64,000 nucleotides of DNA from Blepharisma stoltei ATCC 30299 (lineage: Eukaryota > Protista > Ciliophora). Below the pieces are notes generated by a model. The model worked only from the letters and a program-made list of their open reading frames with translations, was not told the origin of the DNA and did no database searches. The translations under genes were made by a program, and so were the position numbers. Below are positions 2,311-49,115 of the stretch, piece by piece. The stretch is from assembly GCA_965603825.1 (NCBI GenBank), contig CBFDEM010000046.1:496001-560000 (forward strand), in the 5' to 3' direction. Numbering within the stretch: position 1 is the stretch's first letter; each line of letters opens with the position of its first letter.

Positions 2311-2316
2311 AAAAAA
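2311..2316 (-). terminator. Pol III oligo-T terminator of tRNA-Trp
   Basis: T6 on the minus strand, 1 nt after the discriminator base. Confidence 0.75.
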
Positions 2317-2317
2317 G

Positions 2318-2390
2318 TGAACCCAGAGCGACTTGAACGCCCAACCTGCGGATTTGGAGTCCGTTGCACTACCAGTTGTGCTATGGGTCC
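2318..2390 (-). tRNA. trnW: tRNA-Trp(CCA) with 4-bp anticodon stem
   Basis: GGACCCA TA GCAC AACTGGTA GTGC A ACGGA CTCCAAA TCCGC AGGTT GGGCG TTCAAGT CGCTC TGGGTTC A folds into a 73-nt cloverleaf. Anticodon CCA at 2357-2355. Confidence 0.96.
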
Positions 2391-2846
2391 TGCTTGGAAT
2401 AAAATTATTTTGGCTCAATTTAAACCCTTCGTTTGTAGGGATCCGTGCTAATTTTTAATGATGATTGAAAATAAACTCGCAATATAAGATAAACTCATTA
2501 TTTTGTTGGAATGAGCTATAATCACAGTATTAGCAGTTTTTAAGCAAATTAAATGTATTTTTGATTTCTGGTTTAAAATAAATAATAGAAATTCTTTATT
2601 CTTATATTTTTATTGAGTTTCCATTGCATATTATGCTAATAATTTAGTCACATATATATAATTTAAACTGTATTAATTCAGCGTACTTTAATAAATTCCA
2701 GGTCATTTTCAATTTGGCTCCTAAATTGAATATTCCATAAAGCTTCATATGAATTTTTATTAAAAATTTAGATATAAGAAATTACTCTATCTTATTATGG
2801 AATGACTCGAAAATCTTTATAACTAGTTAAAATTATAGATATTTGA

Positions 2847-16450: not shown

Positions 16451-17363
16451 TTCTTCATGATGTATTATTTTAGATGGATTCGTAATTGAAAGAAATAAAA
16501 TAATAAAAAGTCTTGAAATAAAAACAACATTTCAGCATCAAATTTATTGCAATTTACCCAAATTATTGTTTTAGTAAATAATCATTTTTATAAAATTGAT
16601 CCAGAACCAGTTGTCTCAATTGATCTGCATAAAAGACTTTTTATATTTATAATCATGCTGTCCACTTTCAGTTGGCTTATAATAGGCGTACTTGCATTTA
16701 AAATTTTCTTTATTACAGTATGAGATTTTATAAGGCATATTTTCGCATTAATATTTATGCTTAGTTTAATATATAAGGTAGAAAATTTTTAAGAAGCCTT
16801 ATCGGGTTGGGAGATAATATAGAAATTTAAAGAAATATTAATTGTTTCAGATTAGGATTTTATATGGACCATGAGATCCTACCTAAACAATTAGCACATC
16901 TTTTTGGAAATTTATTCATTATCCAATCTCATCAAGACCCTTAAAAAATTTTCCAGCTCATTATATATAAATGAGATAAATGATAGATGTTTGAAGTATC
17001 AGCTGCTAAAGAGGTATAGTTTAAGCAACGAATTTTTATTTAGAATAGATGCAAAATATAAAAGATAGATATCCTTCATAATTCTTTATCACAAATTTTC
17101 TGTTTAGAAGGGAAGAATGCTTTTTGAATTTGTCAGAAAAACAGGTATAAATGATTCTCAAAGTCAATATTTCTAAAATCAGTTTCATTAGTGATATGAA
17201 TTTTGAAACTCCATTTATTAATATCATTCTGTTGAAAATAAATTTAGTAAGCTATAACTACGAAAAAATTTATATTTAACCTTTGTCCACTATGCAAAAT
17301 CTCTTTAATGCATATTTTTATTAATGATTCTTTATTCAAAATTCAAAATTTTCTTAATAATTA

Positions 17364-18200
17364 ATGCATAATTTTAACCAACAGCGCAAGTCATGCATAT
17401 CAGGGCGGCTTGTTTTTCACTTGATTCTTGTTTTCCTTTATCTAGCCCTTATTGCTTGCAAGATTGCAGTTATGAATGTGAAAGATTGATACAAGCAAGG
17501 TTCTGGAACAGTTAAGTGAAAGGGCTCTCTTACTGAAATTTATTCTTCTGGAGGCGGAATAGAGGAGAAATCTTATGCTTGGCTCTCAAATCACTATTGC
17601 GGAAGTTACTCATCTAGCTGCTACTATGATTGTGGTAATTATGAATATTATGACTCTACGGTGGCTTGTTCAACGTTTGAAAATTTAAATGGAGGAGGCA
17701 CCGCATTTATTGTATTTAGTTCCTTAGAAATTGTGTTTGTATTGGCAATGATTGGATTTTCAATTCCTGCAGCACATGCGAATAAAAAATATTTATGTCC
17801 GGTAATATTATTCTCAATTTTAGCGCTAGTTGCAGGCTTAGTTTCATTTGCTGTTATGGCAGGGACTGCAATGATTACATTTTCAGATTCCTGCGATGAA
17901 ACTAAAAGCCACTTATCAAGCCAAGCTAGTTCTTGTGCTCTAACTGGACCAAAATTCGACTTATTCAATCTTTTATATATTTTTACACTCAATTTAATAT
18001 TTTGAATTTATCTCTGTGTATTGAAAGGTGGAGACAAGAAAATTTCTCAGGCTCAAAACGCCAACGTATCTATGACAGCAAATGTCCAGACTCATCAAGA
18101 CCAAGTCCAACCGCCTATTCATGTTTTTCCTTTGGCAGTAGTAGGTCCTCATGTGCCTTCCGATGGTATTCCTATTGGGATTCCTTATAAGGATGCTTAA
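17364..18200 (+). CDS. Cys-rich 4-TM (claudin-like topology) membrane protein, copy 2
   Basis: ATG 17364, three TGA-Trp, TAA 18198-18200, 278 aa. Four hydrophobic segments and a W-Y-K-Q...W-K-G-S-L loop. Confidence 0.8.
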
Positions 18201-18644
18201 ATCTCTTAATTAATAGGAATTAATTTTTCATGATGCATATTTTAATAGAGATAATAATTTTGAAATACAAAGAAGTCCTTGTTTTAAATTTATTTTGATC
18301 TAAATCAAAATAATTCTTTTAATAGAAAAACTTTTTAATAACGCTATCCAGAATCAGTTTTTTCAATTGATCTTTATAGCTGATATTTATAATCATAATT
18401 GTCCAACTTTGAATTGTATATGTCAATTTGAATTCATGATAAAAGCTGCATTATAATATCGATTCAAGAATTTTTCAAGATTTTATTGAAAATGCATCTA
18501 CTCTCTAAAAACAACTTTTATATTACCTCCGATTCAAGAAATACATAGAAACAAAAAAATTCATGCACTATTCTTATATCTACAATTACTCAAAAAATGT
18601 AAAAATTATGAAAAAGAATAATAAATATTATAAGACTCAATTGA

Positions 18645-19439
18645 ATGCAAGATCCCTCAAAGCCTCGATGAAAGATAATCTATATCATATTCATATGCCT
18701 ATATTCTACCCTTATTCCTTTAAAAATTGCAGCAATTAGCACACAAGACTGGTATAAGCAAGAGGGTTTTCAAGAATGGAAAGGATCACTTTTTAAAGTT
18801 TATTCTGCTAGTGAAGGAGATTACAAAGAAGATTCATATGCTGAGCTTGCAAACTACTGATGCGAAACTAGTGAAATTAATAAGAAAACAAAAGATAACT
18901 ATGCAGGATGTGAAATGTTCACAAATCTATCAGGGGGTGGTATCAGCTTTGCTGTATTTAGTGCTGTTGAAATTGTGTTTATTGGCTCTTTTATTGCTTT
19001 TACTCTGTCTGTCATATATTGCGATAAAAATTTTTTGTGCTTGAGAGTCCTTTTTTCTATTTTTTTGACACTTTGTGGAATTCTTGGGTTTATTGTTATG
19101 GCTGGAACATCTATGATTCGATTTAATGATGATTGTGACACAGATGATGATAATTCATCCCAGAGCAGCACTTGTGCATTAGTTGGGCCACAACTGGATT
19201 TGTTTAATTTAGTATATGTCATTACCATATCCTTTGTGTTTTGGGTTTTTATCTGTGCAACTAAATGTGAAAAAAGGATACTTGATGAGAGAATCAATGG
19301 TCAATCTAATATTGAAAGCAACTATAGGAGTCAAGACAGAGCGCAAATGCAAGAAATTCCTATGAATGTTATGAGTTTGCCACTTAATGGCGATAGTAGA
19401 GACCAAAATTCTGGGGCACCTGATATAATTTATGAATAA
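18645..19439 (+). CDS. Cys-rich 4-TM membrane protein, copy 3 (diverged)
   Basis: ATG 18645 in frame with track ORF 18915 via two TGA codons. Shares DWYKQ, WKGSL, GGG..F.VFS and CAL.GP. Confidence 0.8.
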
Positions 19440-22920: not shown

Positions 22921-24132
22921 CTAGCAGATTATCTCCTCAACTTCTACCTCCGGGATTTTCTTCATCTTCATGTTCTGCTGATCTTCCTTTATCAGCTCAA
23001 ATAATGCTTTCATTATATCTCCAACTTCAGTGATCTTATTGTAATTTCTATATTGCCTTTTCCAACAAAAGACGTTGAGACTGTCTTGAAGATTTTTTAA
23101 TTTTCTTGATTTCCGCTTAATATTGTACTTTGCCCAGCACCAGGAAATTTCGATATGCTGAGTATGGATTTCTCTGCTATGAGGATTTACGAAGAACCTT
23201 GAGTGGTCAACAGTATAGTGAGGAAACCCAAGCTCTGGAAGTTTGTTATAAGCAGCCCACTGATCTGAAATTATTGTGGTGCCGGCTTCGCACCGCTTTT
23301 GAATGATAGGCAGTAAATATGCTGCAGTTCTTTTAGGAACTAGTTCCATATAAACCCTTTTGGATTCTCTTTCGTATAAGCCAAATACCCATTTTTCAGG
23401 AGTAGTTTGCCCAAACCCTAAGGGGCCCTTTCCACTTCTAAAGCAAGACTCATCAATTTCCACAATCCCCCTAAACTTCGGCAGCGTCCTCATAAAATGC
23501 TCCGATACAATTTTCTTTAATTTTTCATCAATTTCAGTCTGCTCAACATTACGAATACCAAGCAGCTCGGAGATTTCTTTATCACCAAGATTCATAGCCC
23601 ACAGAAATAAATACAACAAAATTTTATCTTGGCTTAAAGCTGTATCTTCCCAGATACTTCCATGAAGCAACTTTTTACTTTTACTACACTCACAAGTAAA
23701 AATATATTCATTACTATACTCGCAAAATTTAAGGACCATTTCTTTCCCACACTCGCATTTTTTTTCACTTTCAATAACTTTGGTTTGAAGCAAAAAAGAA
23801 ACTGAAAGCTCATGGTCTCTTATAAGAGAGAAAAAATTTGTGGGCATTTGTAGCGCGAGAAGATAGTCTTTTAATGACTGCTTAAAAATGAATGACATTG
23901 GGAGTTTTGCATCTGGCTGTGAAGAATTTTTGATTATTTCTGAGTAGTTTGACTCAAGATTAGTTAGTCTTTCTTCTAGATCGCAAGTAATTGTTTTTAT
24001 ATGGCGAAGTTCTTTTTTGAGTTTTTGGTTGTCCTGCTCAAATAATCAGACTGAAGAGGCTGTTTCTAAGCATGGGCCACAAGAAATATAGTTTTCTTTG
24101 TGGGTGGGACAGATGTCGAGAAACATGGACAT
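22921..24132 (-). CDS. Merlin/IS1595-family DDE transposase, probably domesticated
   Basis: VEIDES (D), WVFG..ER, L.PII....GTTIISDQWAAY..L (D), H.TVDH..FV.P...HTQHIE..W (E). ATG 24132 reached through one TGA, 403 aa. Confidence 0.88.
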
Positions 24133-24381
24133 TATGCTATTATTTTTGTAATAAGTCTTTGGATATTTTAATAATAATTTAAGGCCCCCATTTTAATTAA
24201 AATAATAATAAATCTAGTTTATAAAAATTTATATTTAATATAAGAGAAGACTATCTATTTTTTACTTATCCTTGTTGCAAATATTATTGCTTTAAAGTTG
24301 GAATAACCATAAACATTAATTTTTGATATGAATTATTTTTATAGAAAATACTATAAATTCGAGTTTGCTAACTAAATTATC

Positions 24382-28414: not shown

Positions 28415-29572
28415 TTATTCTACCAGCAATGGAGACTGAGGACTTAGTAATAAATCAGAATTATCGCTGATTCCATTAAAAGGATTTGCTTTGCAAACTG
28501 GACACCTCGGTATATCGATTGACCCTTTGAATCATTCTTCTATACATTTAGAGTGATAAATATGTTTGCAAATTAATTTTCTGACTTCGCTCCCTTCTGA
28601 AAAGCTACATAAAAAATACTCTTCAAAGCAAATACAGCAGGTTTTGGCTTCCCAATCAACTTGAGATTGATCGAAAACTATTTTAGGCAAGTGGAGTTCT
28701 AGTAGATCATCAGGAATTATTGACGCCGATTGATTATGAATCAAAATTTCATACTGTCGAGCTCTTTCAGCGTTTATTGTAGCCAGGTTTCGGACTCTTA
28801 CTCGTCTAATGCTTGATCTAATTTTATATACACAAAAGCAGCAGCAGAAGAAGCAAAAACCTGAGATAGATGAAATTATTATTGTTGTCACAATTCCATG
28901 TGAAGAAGATTCATCGGAATCATTCCCACTTCGGCTTCAGCTGAAAGACATTCCTGAGTAAGCTTTGTATTTATCTCCTGTGAAGTAACCGATAATAAAA
29001 TAATTTCCATCTTCGATGTCAAAAGCATTTCCGTTTGACAAATTATTTAGGACAATTTCCGTTCCGGAACTCTCCCATTTATTTTTAAATAAGCCAGAAT
29101 TTTGGGAAAGAGAGTAATATAATATCTTTAACGATCCAGATTGTGATTCGTGAAAAATTGAAAATGATAAAGAAATGCTTTTCTGAGAGGATTTTTGCTT
29201 GGTAAAGTCAAGAGTTCATATGCATAGAGAGCTTGTTGGAAATGGATCGGAAATCTGGATAAAGCCATCATGGCTTGATAGTACAGTTGCTGGCCCGCAG
29301 CTGGGCTAATTTAAAAATACACTTGTGGAGGTACATTGAGGGTAGTTTCCTTGATATTTATAGCAATATGACAAATTAGGCTCGTTATCACAGTTAAGAC
29401 AAAGGTTAGAGCATGAATTTGAATCTTTGGAGCAGGTCGTTTCAGTACAACTATCACTGGATAAAAATTACGTATATCAATTTATCCCAAAAGCTGTACA
29501 AGCAGAGCAATTTGTTTGGCAACTTGAAGCTAAATCAAGAATAAGTAATACTAGCAAGCTTATTGGTTCCAT
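28415..29572 (-). CDS. Type I membrane RING-H2 E3 ligase (signal peptide, Cys-rich/CUB-like ectodomain, TM, RING-H2)
   Basis: ATG 29572. Introns at 29457-29471, 29306-29320 and 28605-28619. CCICFEDF..LICKHIYHSKCIEE(W=TGA)F...RCPVC. Stop TAA at 28415-28417. Confidence 0.85.
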
Positions 29573-33875: not shown

Positions 33876-35887
<2,012 letters not shown>

Positions 35888-39812: not shown

Positions 39813-40093
39813 TTTAAGAAATTTCTATTTCATTTACTGATATCTCTTTTAGTTACTGATTTCTACATAAACTGCATTTGATAAATAAAATAAGTCGACT
39901 TTTAACTATTTTGCGAGTTTAATTTAATTTTAGCTAATTATATTTTAGCTATTTTATTATTGCAAAGGAAGATCAAATGTATGCAGCGTATTAATTTAAA
40001 ATATAAAATTAATTAGCTGCTAAAATAAAATTATAAATGACGTTTGATGCTATTTTTTAACATTTTTGATATGTGTCGAATTAATTATTAAAA

Positions 40094-40984
40094 ATGAAAA
40101 TCTTTTTAACTGGAGCTACTGGGTCTATTGGAAGTTCAGTTTTGAATAATTTACTCTCTCATGGCCATGAGATAACTTGCACAGTTAGAAGTGAAGAGAA
40201 AGGGCAAGCAATAGCTAGCAAAAGTGACAAAGCTCACTACGTTCTCTTTGATATCGATGCAGATAATGCTCATCAGCTTGGAGAAGTTGCTGCAGGTTAT
40301 GATGCAATCATACATTGTTTACGTCAGAAGTCTTCTGAAGCTGAAGATATAACAATTGATGCCTTAATACTTGCAGCCAGAAAAACAGCTGAAACTAAGC
40401 CGATTACTCTTGTTTTTACTTCAGATTTCGGATTAAATGGCAATACCACTGAAATGATTGATGAAGACCATGATGATACTTCTCATAGTTTTCCATTTTC
40501 AGTTGAAAGACGTTTAAGAGAGCGAAAAATAATAAACGCAAGCACTGAAAATCTCCATGGAGTTGCTATTAGGGTCTGCTGGACCTATGGGAAGAGTTCT
40601 GTAGATAAATGGATTAGAGCTTGCAAATCAGAAAATAAGATTTTGGCTATAGGCCAAAGCAATCCTTATATACCTTTTATCCACATTGAGGATTTAGCTA
40701 ATATGTATAGAGTTCTTATAGAGGAAAGAGCTTATGGATTGTTTTTTGCTGTAGAGCCAGAGTCCCTAACTTTAGGGGATATGATTGCAAAAGTGGCAGC
40801 AGCTGGAAATATTCAAGAAGTGGAAAGAGTAGACAGTCTAGAGAAGCATATTTCAGGACCATATGGATTCTTTTTATTTGGTCACACAATAAACCAACAT
40901 TTTTATCCAAAGAGATTTATTGAGCTTTATGACTTTCACTTTGCTCATAAAATTTCTGACTGGATAAGCTCATTTATTTTCTAA
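40094..40984 (+). CDS. NAD-dependent epimerase/dehydratase (atypical/extended SDR), copy A
   Basis: MKIFLTGATGSIGS Rossmann motif, R..W.YG, FIH.EDLA. Confidence 0.9.
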   Translation: MKIFLTGATGSIGSSVLNNLLSHGHEITCTVRSEEKGQAIASKSDKAHYVLFDIDADNAHQLGEVAAGYDAIIHCLRQKSSEAEDITIDALILAARKTAETKPITLVFTSDFGLNGNTTEMIDEDHDDTSHSFPFSVERRLRERKIINASTENLHGVAIRVCWTYGKSSVDKWIRACKSENKILAIGQSNPYIPFIHIEDLANMYRVLIEERAYGLFFAVEPESLTLGDMIAKVAAAGNIQEVERVDSLEKHISGPYGFFLFGHTINQHFYPKRFIELYDFHFAHKISDWISSFIF

Positions 40985-41333
40985 TAATTCATATTATTAA
41001 TGGATTTGATTTCAGTTTTTTCATTTTTTCTCTTGCTCCAATTTGTGTTTTAATGAGCATTTGTCTTTAAAATTAGTAAATTAGTTCTTATTCCCATTCT
41101 AATAATTTATATATGTTATAATAAAGATGTACCGAAGCAGGCGAGGCTTTTTAGTATCAGTTCTTGATCTTGAACTCATATAAATTATTAAATCTACTTT
41201 TTCTTATGAAAGGCTGTATCAAACTCTAGATGGCCTGCAATTTAAAAACCGAAATATAATTAGGTTGCTAAAATAAAATTATCACCTTGCTTATTTTCAA
41301 TGTTTCTGACACTTGTTGAATTATTATATAAAA

Positions 41334-42224
41334 ATGAGAGTCTTTTTAACTGGAGCCACTGGGTGTGTAGGAAGCTCAGTTTTGAATAATTTACTCTCTC
41401 ACGGTCATGAGATAACTTGCACAGTTAGAAGTGAAGAAAAAGGGCAAGCAATAGCTAGTAAAAGTGACAGAGCTCACTATGTTCTCTTTGATATCGATGT
41501 AAACAATGCTCATCAGCTTGGAGAAGTTGCTGCGGGTTATGATGCAATCATACATTGTGTGTACCAGAGGTCTTCTGAGGCCGAGGATATAACAATTGAT
41601 GCGTTGATACGGGCAGCCAAAAAAACAGCTGAAACTAAGCCGATTACTCTTGTTTATACTTCAGATTTCGGGCTAAATGGTAATACCACTGGAATTATTG
41701 ATGAAGACCACGATGATACTTCTCATAGCTTTCCATTTTCAGTCGCAAGAGCTCTAAGAGAAAGAAAAGTTATAAACGCGAGCACTGAAAACCTCCATGG
41801 AGTTGCTCTTAGAGTTAGCTGGGTCTACGGGAATAGCTCGGTAGATAAGTGGATTAGAGCTTGCAAATCAGAAAATAAAATTTTGGTTGCCAGTCAAAGC
41901 AATCCTCAAATGCCTTTTATTCATCATGAAGATTTAGCTAATATGTATAGAATTCTTATAGAAAAAAGGGCTTATGGATTGTTTTTTGCTGTAGAGCCAG
42001 AATCCCTTACACTGCACGATATGATTGCTAAAGTATCAGCTGTTGGAAATATTCAAGAAGTAGAAAAAGTAGATAACCTAAGGGCGCATATTTCAGGACC
42101 ATATGGGTTCTTTTTATTAGGTCACACAATAGACCAACAGTTTTATCCAAAGAGATTTATTGAGCTTTACGACTTTCACTTTGCTCATAAAATTTCTGAC
42201 TGGATAAGCTCTTTTAATTTCTAA
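41334..42224 (+). CDS. NAD-dependent epimerase/SDR, copy B
   Basis: MRVFLTGATGCVGS; paralog of A and C. True ATG at 41334. Confidence 0.9.
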   Translation: MRVFLTGATGCVGSSVLNNLLSHGHEITCTVRSEEKGQAIASKSDRAHYVLFDIDVNNAHQLGEVAAGYDAIIHCVYQRSSEAEDITIDALIRAAKKTAETKPITLVYTSDFGLNGNTTGIIDEDHDDTSHSFPFSVARALRERKVINASTENLHGVALRVSWVYGNSSVDKWIRACKSENKILVASQSNPQMPFIHHEDLANMYRILIEKRAYGLFFAVEPESLTLHDMIAKVSAVGNIQEVEKVDNLRAHISGPYGFFLLGHTIDQQFYPKRFIELYDFHFAHKISDWISSFNF

Positions 42225-42613
42225 TTATTCATAATTATTAAAAAGTTTGCTTTAAAGCTTTTATCAGCTTTATATTACTCATCTCTTAGGAAAATTAATC
42301 TCCATTACAAATAAAAAAGTTTCATTTAGATACAAAATAATAATAAAGTATATTTATTTAGTTACTTATGTAATAATAATTTATATATATTATAATAAAG
42401 ATGCACCGAAGCAGGCGAGGCTCTTTAGTATCAGTTCTTGATCTTGAACTCATATAAATTATTAAATCTACTTTTTCTTATGAAAGGCTGGATCAAACTC
42501 TAGATGACCTGCAATTTAAAAACCGAAAATTAATTAGGTTGCTAAAATAAAATTATCACGATGTTTGCTTATTTTCAATGTTTCTGACATTAGTTTAATT
42601 ATTATATAAAAAA

Positions 42614-43504
42614 ATGAGAGTCTTTTTAACTGGAGCTACTGGGTCTATAGGAAGCTCAGTTTTGAATAATTTACTCTCTCACGGTCATGAGATAACTTGC
42701 ACAGTTAGAAGTGAAGAAAAAGGGCAAGCAATAGCTAGCAAAAGTGACAAAGCTCATTATGTTCTCTTTGATATCGATGTAAACAATGCTCATCAGCTTG
42801 GAGAAGTTGCTGCGGGTCATGATGCGATTATACATTGTGTGCACCAGAGGTCTTCTGAGGCTGAGGATATAACAATTGATGCGTTGATACGGGCAGCCAG
42901 AAAAACAGCTGAAACTAAGCCGATCACTCTTGTTTATACTTCGGATTTTGGATTAAATGGTAACACCACTGGAATTATTGATGAAGATCATGATGATACT
43001 TCTCATAGCTTTCCATTTTCAGTCGCAAGAGGTCTAAGAGAAAGAAAAGTCATAAATGCAAGCACTGAAAACCTCCATGGAGTTGCTCTTAGAGTTAGCT
43101 GGGTCTATGGGAAGAGCTCTGTAGATAAGTGGATCAGAGCTTGCAAGTCAGAAAATAAAATTTTGATTGCCGGTCAAAGCAATCCTCAAATGCCTTTTAT
43201 TCATCATGAAGATTTAGCTAATATGTATAGAATTCTTATAGAAAAAAGGGCTTATGGATTGTTTTTTGCTGTAGAGCCAGAGTCCCTTACACTGCAGGAT
43301 ATGATTGCAAAAGTAGCAGCTGTTGGAAATATTCAAGAAGTAGAAAGAATAGATAACCTAAGGGCGCATATTTCAGGACCATATGGGTTCTTTTTATTTG
43401 GTCACACAATAGACCAACAGTTTTATCCAAAAAGATTTATTGAACTTTACGACTTTCACTTTGCTCATAAAATTTCTGACTGGATAAGCTCGTTTAATTT
43501 CTAA
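42614..43504 (+). CDS. NAD-dependent epimerase/SDR, copy C
   Basis: Near-identical to copy B, including the flanks. Confidence 0.9.
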   Translation: MRVFLTGATGSIGSSVLNNLLSHGHEITCTVRSEEKGQAIASKSDKAHYVLFDIDVNNAHQLGEVAAGHDAIIHCVHQRSSEAEDITIDALIRAARKTAETKPITLVYTSDFGLNGNTTGIIDEDHDDTSHSFPFSVARGLRERKVINASTENLHGVALRVSWVYGKSSVDKWIRACKSENKILIAGQSNPQMPFIHHEDLANMYRILIEKRAYGLFFAVEPESLTLQDMIAKVAAVGNIQEVERIDNLRAHISGPYGFFLFGHTIDQQFYPKRFIELYDFHFAHKISDWISSFNF

Positions 43505-44808
43505 TTATTCATAATTATTAAAAAACTTGCTTTAAAGCTTTTATCAGCTTTATATTATCATCTCTTACTTAGAACCATATTATAAGTAATTTTCTTAAAA
43601 TTATATAAAAAATTCTTCCTTTATCTCTGGAAAATTTTCAAATTCCGATGCAAATTTCCTCTTTAATTTTTATATGTAAATAGCTTTGATATGCAATCTT
43701 ATTTCACCAAGATTGATATATTAACCTATAATTTTTATATTTTAAATGAAATGCATAAAGTTAACGCTTTAAATTAATAAATTTAATAAATTAATTTTTA
43801 GAACTGGTTGATTCCAGAGAGAAGTCTCTCAAGGCAATAGTGGCTTCCATTGAGAAAGTATCTAACCTATCAAAGTTCCATTGTTAAAGCTTTTGATCCA
43901 AGCTACATATAACAGCAATCTGGAACCCAGAAGGACTAGTGAAGTAGAAATACAAAACTTTCCCAAATTAATCTATTTAATCTATTAAAAGTAAAGTAAT
44001 TCAAAATATTTTAGTTTCGAATTGATAATTGATAATCTAACTTGAACAATTTTTATGTCAGACTCTAATTATCTTAATATATTTTTTTATTTCTTAACTT
44101 ATCCCTCATCTTTACTGTTACAAACTTCATAGACTTATGACAAACAAAGGATTTTTGAAAGATAAGCTAAATTTGATGATTTGCTTCTTAATCTTTCTTT
44201 GCTGCTTGTAAACTGATTTCTTTATTTGAAATTGCGGGCTTTCCTAGTTTATCTAATAAATTGCCTGCATTTATTTAAAATTAGGCGAAATTCCTCTTGG
44301 TAAGAGAGTAAAATCATTAAGCAATATTAGTGCCAAATTAAATTTTTAAATTGCGCTTAGTTATCTTATTTCCTAATTTTTGAATTTAATGCTGCTGCAT
44401 TTATTTTATCAATAAACCCTAAAAATTCTTTTAGTTTTTTTCTGGGAAATGATTTTTTCTTTTCAAAACATTTTATAATAAAACTCATATCGCGATCTTT
44501 CTTAAGTTCTTTCGGGAGATTAATCTCTACTTTTTCATCATCCTTGAATTTTGGAGAAAAAATATGGTGCAGCTATTAATTCCACGTTATGTTTTGCAAA
44601 GAAAAAGAAAAAAATTACGACTCCATAATCTATCAAATATAGAATATGACTTTAATTTTCGCTTATTTTACCAATAAAAAATTTTATGTCGATCTAAAAG
44701 CTGCTTTATATTTCTTTATTGATTATATCAAAAGAAGTCGCTTAGCCAAGTTTAGACATTTTAACATTCAAATTTTTAGCACCATTATCCAACGATTATA
44801 ATAATAAA

Positions 44809-45712
44809 ATGAGAGTTTTTTTAACCGGAGCAACTGGGTCAATTGGAAGTTCAGTTCTTGAAAGTTTACTTTCTCATGGCCATGACGTCACTTGCACTGT
44901 AAGAAACGAAGAAAAGGGGCAAGTAATAGCAAGTAAAGGCGATAGAGCACATTATATTATATTTGATATTAATGGTAATACTGCTCATCAACTCGCCGAA
45001 CTTGCAGTAGGCTATGATGCAATTATTGACTGTATTCAGCAACCGTTCACGAAAGAGGGCGCTATAGCAGAAGACATTACCGTTGACGCTTTGATACAAG
45101 CAGCTAAAAAGACATCAGAAACTAAGCCTGTCACCTTTGTATACACTGCAGGAATTGGAGTTATAGGAAATACAACGAGTGTCATAAATGAAGACCATGA
45201 TGATACTTCCAATAGTTGGGAATTTTCAAAGCCAAGAATCTTAAGAGAAAAAAAAGTTATTAATGCGAGCACGGAAAATCTTCATGGTGTTTCCCTTAGA
45301 GTAAGCTGGGTTTATGGGAAAAGCTCTGTAGACCACTGGATTCGAGCTTGTAAATCCCAAAATAAGATTGTTGTTGCTAGTCAAAAATAACCCTTGTATT
45401 CCTTTCATCCACCATGAAGATTTAGCTAATATGTATCGAATTCTTATAGAGCAAAGAGCTTATGGGATGTTTTTTGCTGTGGAGCCAGAATCTGCGTCTC
45501 TTCAAATTTTGATTGAAAGAGTAGCAGCAGTTGGAAACATTCATGAGATAGAAAGAGTTAACAATGCATATGCTCACATTTCAGGACCATATGGGATTTT
45601 TTTACTCAGCGGTATGTTGAATCAGCAAGTGTACCCTAAAAGATTTATTGAGCTTTATGGTTTCCGCCATGCTCATAATATCCTTGACTGGGTAAGCTCA
45701 TTTACTTTTTAA
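44809..45712 (+). pseudogene. NAD-dependent epimerase/SDR, copy D, with +1 frameshift
   Basis: 904 bp versus 903 bp for sister copy E. An extra A in caaaaataa (45382-45390) gives CAA AAA TAA. Confidence 0.75.
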
Positions 45713-47011
45713 TCATTAATGATAATAAGTTATTGATTAATATTTGTTTAATTTTGATGTTTTTTATCTGAGCTTATGACTTATAAATATTTTAGGATTA
45801 AAAAAATTTTTAAAATTAATAATTAATCTGTAATTGAAGTAATCTATATTTATTATCTAAATGCAACAATTATAGCATATAATACAATTTTCTACACTTA
45901 TATTATATCTGGCTCCTTCACACTAGCAAAGTTAACATTTTGAGTCCTTTCGTGATCAATAATAAAGATGACTTTTAATCAATAAATTCGGTGCAGGAAT
46001 AACTTATTTTTGTCAAGGTTATGCATATAGGATAGGAGGAAAAGCAAGACAGTGGAAGGACATATGGAAGTGGATTAAATGCTTATAAAACCAAATAAAA
46101 GTTACGAGCAATCCGTTCTCTCTGTCGTGGTGTCCTTATGAATATTTAGGCATCGCGTTTTGGATCAAGGTATTGATTGCATATGATCAGTAGCTTCAAA
46201 TAAGAGACTTGAGACTTTTTTTAGATGAGGCTGGGTCTTAACTCTTCTATGATAATTGAATCAGTACCCATCCAGTTGCGTTCGATATGGAGTAGATAAG
46301 CATACTTGCTCAAGCTGAATTAATTCAAAAAATTTAGATTTAAGTTGATAATATATAATCTAACTAGAAAAATTTTATGTGCTACTGTAATTAGCTTCAT
46401 ATTTATTTTATTTCTTAACTCATCACTTAGCTTTACCGTTGCAAATTTCGTAGGCTTATGATAAACGAAGGATTTCAAAAATCTAAGTAAAATTTGTTGA
46501 TTTACTTCTTAATCTTTCTTTGAGATTTATAAACTTTTTTTCTTTATTTGAAAAATGATGGTTTCCCTAGTTTTTCTAATAAATTACCTGTATTTATTTA
46601 TCCCAAAGAAATTTTTTCCTGATTTTCTGGAAAATGATTTTTCTTTCCAATGCCTTTTTCTTATTAAACTCTTATAGCAATATCTCTTAAATTCATTCAG
46701 AAGATTAATCTCTTCTTTTCAATCATTCCTTAACTTTTGGAGAAGAAATATGATGCTGTGAATATAATTCCTATTCCTTTTAAAACTTTAGATTGCTTTA
46801 GTTTTGCAAAGAAAAAGAAAATTTACAGCTATTTCTGACTCGTATTCCATAATCTATCAAATATTGAATTTGCCTTCAATTTTCTCTTATTTTACCGATA
46901 AAAAATTTTTAAAGTTCCCGTCGATATAAAAGCCTGCTTTATATTTAGCCAAGTTTAGACATTTTAACATTCAAATTTTTAGCACCATTATCCAACGATT
47001 ATAATAATAAA

Positions 47012-47914
47012 ATGAGAGTCTTTTTAACAGGAGCTACTGGATCAGTTGGAAGTTCAGTTCTTGAAAATTTACTTTCTCATGGCCATGACGTCACTTGCAC
47101 TGTAAGAAATGAAGAAAAGGGACAAGTAATAGCAAGTAAAGGCGATAGAGCACATTACATTATATTGGACATTAATGATAAGACTGCTCACCAACTCGCC
47201 GAACTTGCAGTAGGCTATGATGCAATTATTGAATGCGCTCAATTACCATTCACAAATGAGGGTGTTATAGCACAAGAAATTTCCGTTGACGCTCTGATAC
47301 AGGCAGCTAAAAAAACAGCAGAAACTAAGCATGTCAGTCTTGTATATACTTCAGGGATTGGAGTTATAGGAAATACAACTGGTGTTATTGATGAAGACCA
47401 TGATGATACTTCCCATAGCTGGGAATTTTCAACGCCAAGAATCTTAAGAGAAAAAAAAGTTATTAATGCGAGCACGGAAAATCTTCATGGAGTTTCCCTT
47501 AGAGTAAGCTGGGTTTATGGGAATAGCACTGTAGACCACTGGATTCGAGCTTGCAAATCCCAAAATAAGATTGTTGTTGCTAATCAAAATGACACTTATA
47601 TTCCTTTCATCCACCACGAAGATTTAGCTAGTATGTTTCGAATTCTTATAGAGCAAAGAGCTTATGGGATGTTTTTTGCTGTGGAGCCAGAATCTGCGTC
47701 TCTTCAAAGTTTGATTGAAAGAGTAGCAGCAGTTGGAAACATTCATGAAATAGAAAGAGTTGACAATGCATGGGCTCATATTTCGGGACCATACGGATTT
47801 TTTTTACTAGGCCATACGTTGAATGAGCAAGTGTATCCTAGAAGACTTATTGAGCTTTATGGTTTCCGCCACGCTCATAAAATCCTTGACTGGGTAAGCT
47901 CATTTACTTTTTAA
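47012..47914 (+). CDS. NAD-dependent epimerase/SDR, copy E
   Basis: Intact 300-aa ORF with TGATGSVGS. Confidence 0.9.
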   Translation: MRVFLTGATGSVGSSVLENLLSHGHDVTCTVRNEEKGQVIASKGDRAHYIILDINDKTAHQLAELAVGYDAIIECAQLPFTNEGVIAQEISVDALIQAAKKTAETKHVSLVYTSGIGVIGNTTGVIDEDHDDTSHSWEFSTPRILREKKVINASTENLHGVSLRVSWVYGNSTVDHWIRACKSQNKIVVANQNDTYIPFIHHEDLASMFRILIEQRAYGMFFAVEPESASLQSLIERVAAVGNIHEIERVDNAWAHISGPYGFFLLGHTLNEQVYPRRLIELYGFRHAHKILDWVSSFTF

Positions 47915-48218
47915 TCATTAATGATAATAAGTTATTGATTAATATTTGTACCTTTTTAATTTTGAAGTTTTTTATTCTGTTCACTTTATAATGCTTAAGA
48001 GTAATCAATCTGTAATAGAAGGATATATATTTTTTATTTAATACAAAATTATAGCTTATAATTATATTGCTTCACCTTTTGACGATATCTATATAAAAAT
48101 CTAAAAAGATTTTCAGAAATATCAAATTTATTCTTAAATTTCTAGCTATGTTTGCTCTTTAAATCCATTTTTGTGCATACATCTGTTGTTAAATTGTTTT
48201 TCAAAAATTATAAAATAA

Positions 48219-49115
48219 ATGAGAGTATTTTTAACAGGAGCAACTGGATCAATAGGAAGCTCAGTGCTACAAACTCTCCTTTCCCATGGCCACGAAGTCA
48301 CTTGCACAGTCAGAAGTGAAGAGAAGAGACAAATTATAGCAAGCAAAGGAGAAAGAGCGCGTTCTATCTTTTTTGATATTAATTCCAATACTGCTCACCA
48401 GCTTGCTGAAGTTGCTGTTGGCTATGATGCTCTCATACACTGTGCTTGACTACCTTTTACTGAGGAAGGAGCTATGGCAGAAAATATGACAATAGATGCT
48501 ATGATACAGGCAGCAAGAAAAACAGCTGAAACGAAACCTGTCTCTATTGTTTATACTTCAGGAATAAGTATAAGTTCCAATACTAATGGAATTATTGATG
48601 AAGACCATGATGATCCTACTCACTGCTGGGAGCTATCTGTTCCAAGAGAGAAAAAAATTATCGATGCCAGTTCAGAGAATATTTATGCAGCTGTTATAAG
48701 AGTTAGTTGGGTTTATGGGAATAGCACTGTAGATCAATGGATTAGGGCTTGCAAAGCCAATAATAAGGTTGTTGTGGGCGGGAGTCAAGATAACTATCAT
48801 ATTTCTCTTATTCATCATGAAGATTTAGCTAATATGTATAGAACTCTTGTAGAGAAAAGGGGTTATGGGCTGTTTTTTGCAGCTGAGCCAGAAGCTGCAA
48901 CTCTTTCAAGCTTGATTGGAAGAATGAGAGAAGTTGGAGGCATTCAAGAAGTAGAAAGGGTTAATAATCCATGGGAGCATTGCTCAGGGCCTTATGGGTA
49001 CTTCTTATTATGCCATGCGCTTGATCAGCAATTCTACCCTAAAAGATTTATTGAGCTTTATGATTTTCATCATACTCATAGGTTTCTGGACTGGATAAAT
49101 ACTTTTACTTTTTAG
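48219..49115 (+). CDS. NAD-dependent epimerase/SDR, copy F
   Basis: Two track ORFs in frame across TGA 48447-48449. Confidence 0.88.

Follow-up and report, generated by a model that had tools for sequence, protein, structure and literature searches.

The stretch analysed here in full, called the window throughout, is a 64-kb segment of contig 46 of the Blepharisma stoltei ATCC 30299 genome (C46, positions 496001-560000; contigs of the assembly that we searched are written C1, C4 and so on). The contig is gene-dense, has 32% GC and starts with CCCTAACA telomere repeats. The genome searched comprises 41,464,486 bp in 64 contigs, and the published macronuclear genome of this strain is described as 41 Mbp in 64 telomere-to-telomere sequences with CCCTAACA telomeres, 66% AT and UGA translated as Trp (PMC9942806). 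ARAGORN called a single tRNA gene in the window, located at 2317-2390 of the minus strand and assigned as tRNA-Trp(CCA). The Rfam tRNA model RF00005 matched 2318-2390 on the same strand (62 bits, E 5e-11, gathering score 29), and its NC line marked the outermost pair of the anticodon stem as non-standard. Both programs bear out the original prediction of a tRNA-Trp(CCA) at 2318-2390 and supply the strand, which it had not given. The features of the locus, in which tRNA position i corresponds to window base 2391-i, are as follows.

2318-2390, minus strand: nuclear tRNA-Trp(CCA) gene, 73 nt, eukaryote-type (G1:C72, A73, CCA not encoded); from ARAGORN, Rfam and identity to the published tRNA-Trp-CCA-50
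2364, minus strand: A27, 5' partner in the open top pair of the anticodon stem; from the sequence and the cmscan NC flag
2348, minus strand: C43, the 3' partner; the A27·C43 mismatch leaves a 4-bp stem; from the sequence, the cmscan NC flag and RNAfold
2355-2357, minus strand: anticodon CCA (positions 34-36); from ARAGORN, the sequence and Rfam
2311-2316, minus strand: TTTTTT run, with one C between A73 and the run, the expected Pol III terminator; from the sequence
2391-2395, minus strand: AAGCA 5' leader; from the alignment of six gene copies

The anticodon arm reads ACGGA / CUCCAAA / UCCGC, with pairs 28:42 to 31:39 all Watson-Crick, and RNAfold returned a cloverleaf whose anticodon stem has 4 bp. 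The sequence, the Rfam flag and the predicted fold therefore agree on the A27·C43 mismatch above four Watson-Crick pairs that had been proposed from the letters. The remaining stems pair normally, as had also been proposed: the acceptor stem (GGACCCA/UGGGUUC) carries a single wobble, G2·U71, the D stem is GCAC/GUGC, and the T stem (GGGCG/CGCUC) contains one G·U wobble. Internal A- and B-box consensus sequences are present (T8-A14, TAGCACA; G53-A58, GTTCAA). The discriminator base is A73, and we take its combination with G1:C72 to be the eukaryote-type Trp identity. G1:C72, A73, the T-run and the unencoded CCA identify a eukaryotic nuclear Pol III gene. On these features, and with the gene lying in a gene-dense ciliate contig of 32% GC, we rejected a bacterial or organellar origin.

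A BLAST search of the gene against its own genome recovered six copies, all 100% identical, one each on C46, C44 and C14 and three on C4. A structural search pattern covering class-I tRNAs of every kind with anticodon CCA returned these six and no further real tRNA-Trp. When the six loci were aligned, identity ended at the gene borders, beyond which only the AAGCA leader and a trailer of C plus a T-run were common to all; the terminator is T6 in five copies and T5 in one. Because their flanks are unrelated, the six genes are not recent segmental duplicates, and all keep A27·C43 nonetheless. The AAGCA lying directly 5' of all six genes is invariant, and may be a leader, processing or transcription-start element. 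No 5-bp copy of tRNA-Trp was found in the genome by IUPAC pattern scans that recovered the six Trp genes as a positive control.

To place the mismatch against a background, we compared position 27:43 among other tRNAs. It is paired in 19 of the 21 distinct tRNA sequences sampled from the genome, the exceptions being tRNA-Trp (A·C) and tRNA-Ser(CGA) (U·U). The latter, with U27·U43 unpaired, is encoded at C13:787064-787144 and C63:468433-468513. A set of 80 metagenomic tRNA-Trp genes that match in the lower stem and loop gave 77 with 27:43 paired and none with A·C; these genes are mostly bacterial (A1, G73, mostly with encoded CCA) and serve as a background rate only, not as ciliate relatives. 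The remaining three, all tRNA-Trp(CCA) genes, are mismatched as C·A, G·A and A·A, in line with a 2026 NAR paper that reports 4-bp stems from bacteria. The tRNA-Trp of B. japonicum and B. undulans has this A and C unpaired as well, as seen in the ARAGORN drawings in the source data of Swart et al. (bioRxiv 10.1101/2023.10.09.561518; hereafter the Swart preprint). The A27·C43 mismatch in tRNA-Trp is more than chance.

The reassigned code that such a tRNA would serve is evident in the window itself. With TGA counted as sense, open reading frames (ORFs) of 150 codons or more added up to 17,091 codons instead of 10,985; counting TAG as sense gave little gain. Across 36 non-overlapping ORFs of at least 200 codons, 37 in-frame TGA codons stand against 80 TGG, confirming the many in-frame UGAs of the original prediction. 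In frame, TGA occurs at about one tenth of its out-of-frame frequency (0.0029 versus 0.033 per codon), the expectation for a rare sense codon. In alignments of paralogues and internal repeats within the window, four of the five TGA columns lie opposite TGG. Three of these come from the first member (17361-18197) of a pair of tandem paralogues, where TGA faces TGG of the second (18603-19436), and the single TGA of the second faces Tyr. The TGA codons with aligned or domain context are listed below.

17487-17489, plus strand: in-frame TGA opposite TGG of the paralogue at 18603-19436; likewise 17517-17519 and 18003-18005; from the alignment
34788-34790, plus strand: in-frame TGA just 5' of the first SAM domain of the ORF at 34338-35384, opposite TGG of the second SAM repeat; from the alignment and Pfam
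28532-28534, minus strand: in-frame TGA within a RING-H2 finger, between ...KCIEE and FKGS...CPVC; from Pfam zf-RING_2

Pfam was run separately on the ORF pieces on either side of a TGA. The SAM_1 and SAM_2 matches begin right after the TGA at 34788-34790, and the zf-RING_2 match covers profile positions 2-31, stopping at the TGA at 28532-28534. At the position where this TGA falls, Pfam RING models consistently carry Trp. The +4 base after an in-frame TGA is A in 19 of 37 cases in the window, in agreement with the 52.1% reported after UGA in the Swart preprint. Within the window ORFs, a single TGA lies no more than 30 codons from a stop. In Blepharisma, UGA appears to specify only Trp, and UAA and UAG serve for termination. 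Two further arrangements were noted in the window. Five tandem paralogous ORFs of about 300 codons, starting MRVFLTGATG..., occupy 40085-49112 on the plus strand; one contains an in-frame TGA, and the shared start is the motif that NAD(P)-binding epimerase/dehydratase-like proteins have at their N-terminus. A 423-codon ORF at 22924-24192 on the minus strand also contains a single in-frame TGA, close to the N-terminus.

Published work (2023) already covers this exact locus, including the gene and its structure, expression and interpretation. The tRNAscan-SE table of the Swart preprint lists Contig_50 498390-498318, Trp CCA, score 57.7, which corresponds to window positions 2318-2390, and the FASTA entry tRNA-Trp-CCA-50 is identical to the window gene. 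The five further Trp genes and the tRNA-Sec gene that we found stand at the same numerical positions in that table, and only the contig numbering differs. The preprint also shows the 4-bp anticodon stem of Blepharisma tRNA-Trp(CCA) (its Fig. 1), counts six identical genes in B. stoltei and reports no nuclear tRNA-Trp(UCA). The original prediction had made its novelty depend on the species; since the species is B. stoltei, for which Swart et al. list the same gene and the same 4-bp stem with the same interpretation, the finding is already known. For the genera Blepharisma and Loxodes, the 2026 NAR paper refers to this work, under the citation eLife 2024;13:RP93502.

The prediction had left expression and editing of C34 to tRNA sequencing, and published data answer both points. 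YAMAT-seq in the Swart preprint placed about 173,000 reads on tRNA-Trp, with 172,863 C, 41 T, 22 A and 3 G counted at the first anticodon base. These data show expression of the tRNA, and C34 is unedited in 99.96% of 172,929 reads. These counts bear directly on a reading in which the mature tRNA differs from its gene, either by conversion of C34 to U, as occurs in tRNA-Trp of Leishmania mitochondria, or by editing of A27 or C43 that restores a 5-bp stem. The latter variant could draw on the mention, in the same preprint, of modified bases at unspecified non-anticodon positions. Contigs from four public runs, three assigned to coded organisms and one to a rhizosphere metatranscriptome, carry the identical 73 nt between different genomic flanks, and no letter of tRNA-Trp differed in these contigs, which drop rare variants. 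We know of no editing at positions 27 or 43 in eukaryotic cytosolic tRNAs. We consider an edited decoder extremely unlikely.

We then considered whether another tRNA could supply Trp at UGA. The genome-wide Rfam tRNA search scored 63 of 2,298 candidates, and the inventory was drawn instead from IUPAC pattern scans and the published tRNAscan-SE table. In the genome, these scans, which are not exhaustive, gave three pattern hits for a class-I tRNA with a UCA anticodon; the number was not above control, and none was confirmed by ARAGORN. When the genome was scanned for a UCA-bearing version of the Trp anticodon arm, three mismatches being allowed, the six CCA genes were recovered and all else was at chance level (34 matches versus 51 in the control), and none of the four best other hits was a tRNA by ARAGORN. 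The Rfam tRNA-Sec model gave one clear match, at C30:34444-34529 (75.6 bits, anticodon UCA), and the single TCA entry in the tRNAscan-SE table of the Swart preprint is likewise SeC. That inventory holds 169 tRNAscan-SE and 176 ARAGORN predictions, with which our scans agree. Pattern scans, Rfam and the published table together leave tRNA-Sec as the only standard tRNA with a UCA anticodon, beside six identical tRNA-Trp(CCA) genes with a 4-bp stem, so that a genome-wide survey of Trp and UCA tRNAs upholds the proposal that UGA is decoded without a UCA-anticodon tRNA.

Non-standard RNAs offer a further candidate. The Swart preprint describes a 'Contig_39 tRNA-like(UCA)' RNA and three relatives on Contig_1, which are CCA-tailed and conserved. 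The Contig_39 RNA reaches about 7,800x in YAMAT-seq. For the tRNA-like(UCA), base modification is also reported, and conservation among Blepharisma species is given as 93.8%, compared with about 61% for the flanks. The preprint also counts two cytosolic TrpRS genes in Blepharisma, unlike the other ciliates examined there. We located the UCA-loop tRNA-like genes by sequence pattern and found five copies.

C33:543665-543736, minus strand: tRNA-like gene with UCA loop
C1:245791-245863, minus strand: tRNA-like gene with UCA triplet
C1:246555-246624, plus strand: tRNA-like gene with UCA triplet
C1:246761-246829, plus strand: tRNA-like gene with UCA triplet
C52:366640-366710, minus strand: tRNA-like gene with UCA triplet, a fifth copy where the preprint discusses four

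All five share an acceptor stem of the form UCCARGG/CCYUGGA, C73 and a normal T arm with covarying pairs, and in all of them the UCA triplet persists in the middle region while the arm around it varies. Each D arm is miniature, with 3-4 bp closing a loop of 3-4 nt. Alignment of the five copies revealed no common anticodon stem. Only the C33 copy folds as a cloverleaf, and its 7-nt loop would read UAUCAAA, with A at the universal U33; the C52 copy forms a 7-bp stem with a 10-nt loop, and the other copies have 10-nt loops or none. The Rfam tRNA model gave no match at E up to 1 in two Contig_1 loci that together span all three C1 copies. Two related observations concern other loci. A candidate at C33:56559-56630 (ARAGORN 'tcca') was rejected as the published tRNA-like(UCA): its loop contains no UCA, and tRNAscan-SE scores it as Phe AAA with 32.3 bits. 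It belongs to a second odd tRNA-like group, together with C42:21582-21656 and C42:21724-21795, that shares the acceptor stem UCAGAG(A/G), C73 and enlarged anticodon loops of 8-10 nt; the published tRNAscan-SE table enters the group as Phe AAA (32.3), Leu CAG (56.9) and an undetermined pseudogene.

A role of these UCA-loop RNAs as a separate cognate UGA decoder, perhaps charged by the second cytosolic TrpRS paralogue, could draw on their high coverage, CCA tail, base modification and conservation, on the retention of UCA in five of five copies, on the covariation in the T stem and on the presence of two cytosolic TrpRS genes. Their structure argues otherwise. Where the tRNA-Trp of the genome has G1:C72 and A73, the tRNA-like genes have U1:A72 and C73, which makes them unlikely Trp-inserting UGA decoders, puzzling as their conserved UCA is. 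The miniature D arm, the missing common anticodon stem, the A at U33 in the best-folding copy, the 10-nt loops or none elsewhere and the lack of an Rfam tRNA match at the C1 loci weigh in the same direction, and the preprint authors see no resemblance to tRNA-Trp. We consider a decoding role of this kind very improbable. Just as improbable is a milder version, in which the UCA-loop RNAs act alongside the short-stem tRNA-Trp in UGA reading or its regulation, perhaps by way of the additional cytosolic TrpRS.

Release factor eRF1 is the other party at a UGA codon, and we inspected its genes as the original prediction had suggested. Four genes in the genome encode an eRF1_1 domain, namely three eRF1 paralogues and Pelota. 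By our count, the eRF1 residue six positions after the NIKS/SIKS serine (position 67) is Ala on C11, Ala on C37 and Ser on C28. The main text of the Swart preprint, which gives the highly expressed paralogue as Ala67 and a weakly expressed one as Ser67, agrees with these sequences. The supplement of the preprint gives 'one with Ala67, two with Ser67', a small discrepancy from the Ala, Ala and Ser found here. Swart et al. show that Ala67 is neither necessary nor sufficient across ciliates. Since Ala67 also occurs in heterotrichs with the standard code, the eRF1 part is not diagnostic.

The mismatch could accordingly be questioned from the side of termination: weak UGA recognition by eRF1 might let any tRNA-Trp(CCA) win, with the open 27:43 pair incidental or a minor helper. 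Such a view is consistent with Ala67 in the main eRF1, with the eRF1 of B. japonicum, which recognises UGA most weakly in vitro, and with the yeast 5-bp tRNA-Trp(CCA), a readthrough-inducing tRNA that already gives some UGA readthrough. It sits poorly with Stentor, Fabrea and Climacostomum, which combine Ala67 with the standard code and a 5-bp tRNA-Trp, and with the retention of A27·C43 in six copies and three Blepharisma species and its recurrence in Loxodes. Moreover, UGA is depleted upstream of true stop codons, which suggests that eRF1 still competes for it. We regard decoding driven mainly by eRF1 as unlikely, though it is the more credible of the alternatives weighed here.

We hypothesize instead that the sole cytosolic tRNA-Trp, encoded by six identical genes, reads both UGG and UGA and that its 27:43 mismatch makes UGA reading efficient, an account that structure, gene inventory and comparison with related systems render very probable. 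Pol III would transcribe the gene from its internal promoter to the T-run terminator, and CCA would be added post-transcriptionally. A eukaryote-type TrpRS would then charge the tRNA through G1:C72, A73 and the CCA anticodon. On the ribosome, UGG would be read through normal pairing and UGA with C34 mismatched to the A in the third codon position. The stem, shortened to 4 bp by the unpaired A27·C43, would make such near-cognate reading efficient, and poor UGA recognition by the main eRF1 with Ala67 may lessen the competition. For Blepharisma, the causal link between the 27:43 mismatch and efficient UGA reading is something we infer from tRNAs assayed in other systems.

In these systems the effect of the short stem has been measured. 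In the tRNAs of Blastocrithidia nonstop and Condylostoma magnum, a 4-bp stem leads to much higher UGA readthrough (Kachale et al. 2023, Nature 613:751). Altered contacts of the anticodon stem with the A-site proteins eS30 and eS25 are reported to be the reason. The statement in the original prediction that 4-bp tRNA-Trp(CCA) promotes UGA reading in Blastocrithidia and Condylostoma is thereby backed by yeast and T. brucei reporters. Both systems resemble Blepharisma in the CCA anticodon, the open top pair, UGA translated as Trp, the lack of a cytosolic tRNA-Trp(UCA) and the unedited C34. They differ in that their tRNAs were assayed in yeast and T. brucei reporters, whereas the Blepharisma tRNA-Trp is known from sequence and tRNA-seq, and in that the mismatch described for B. 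nonstop is C·U rather than A·C. In those hosts UGA (or UAA in Blastocrithidia) doubles as a stop, whereas in Blepharisma UGA is apparently Trp only. The main tRNA-Trp(CCA) of Loxodes magnus, where UGA is also Trp, has the same A27·C43 over a 4-bp stem (ATCGA/TCGAC). By contrast, it is present in more than 100 copies, accompanied by a few 5-bp likely pseudogenes, and UGA in this species is ambiguous (Trp or stop). Mutants of E. coli su7 at 27:43 provide a further parallel, in that a broken pair led to more near-cognate reading, including third-position A·C (Schultz and Yarus 1994). These are engineered bacterial suppressors, whereas Blepharisma would use a natural genome-wide decoder. Paramecium biaurelia carries a 4-bp tRNA-Trp, yet UGA reading is not known there (Swart preprint), so the mismatch alone may not suffice.

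What the window contributes is confirmation, not discovery. To the published description we add small controls: the diverged flanks of the six genes with their invariant AAGCA, the state of 27:43 in other tRNAs, and the reassigned code replicated within the window. The short-stem tRNA-Trp is the current explanation of how UGA turned into a Trp codon without a matching anticodon in some eukaryotes, and Blepharisma is its cleanest case, because UGA there seems to be read only as Trp.
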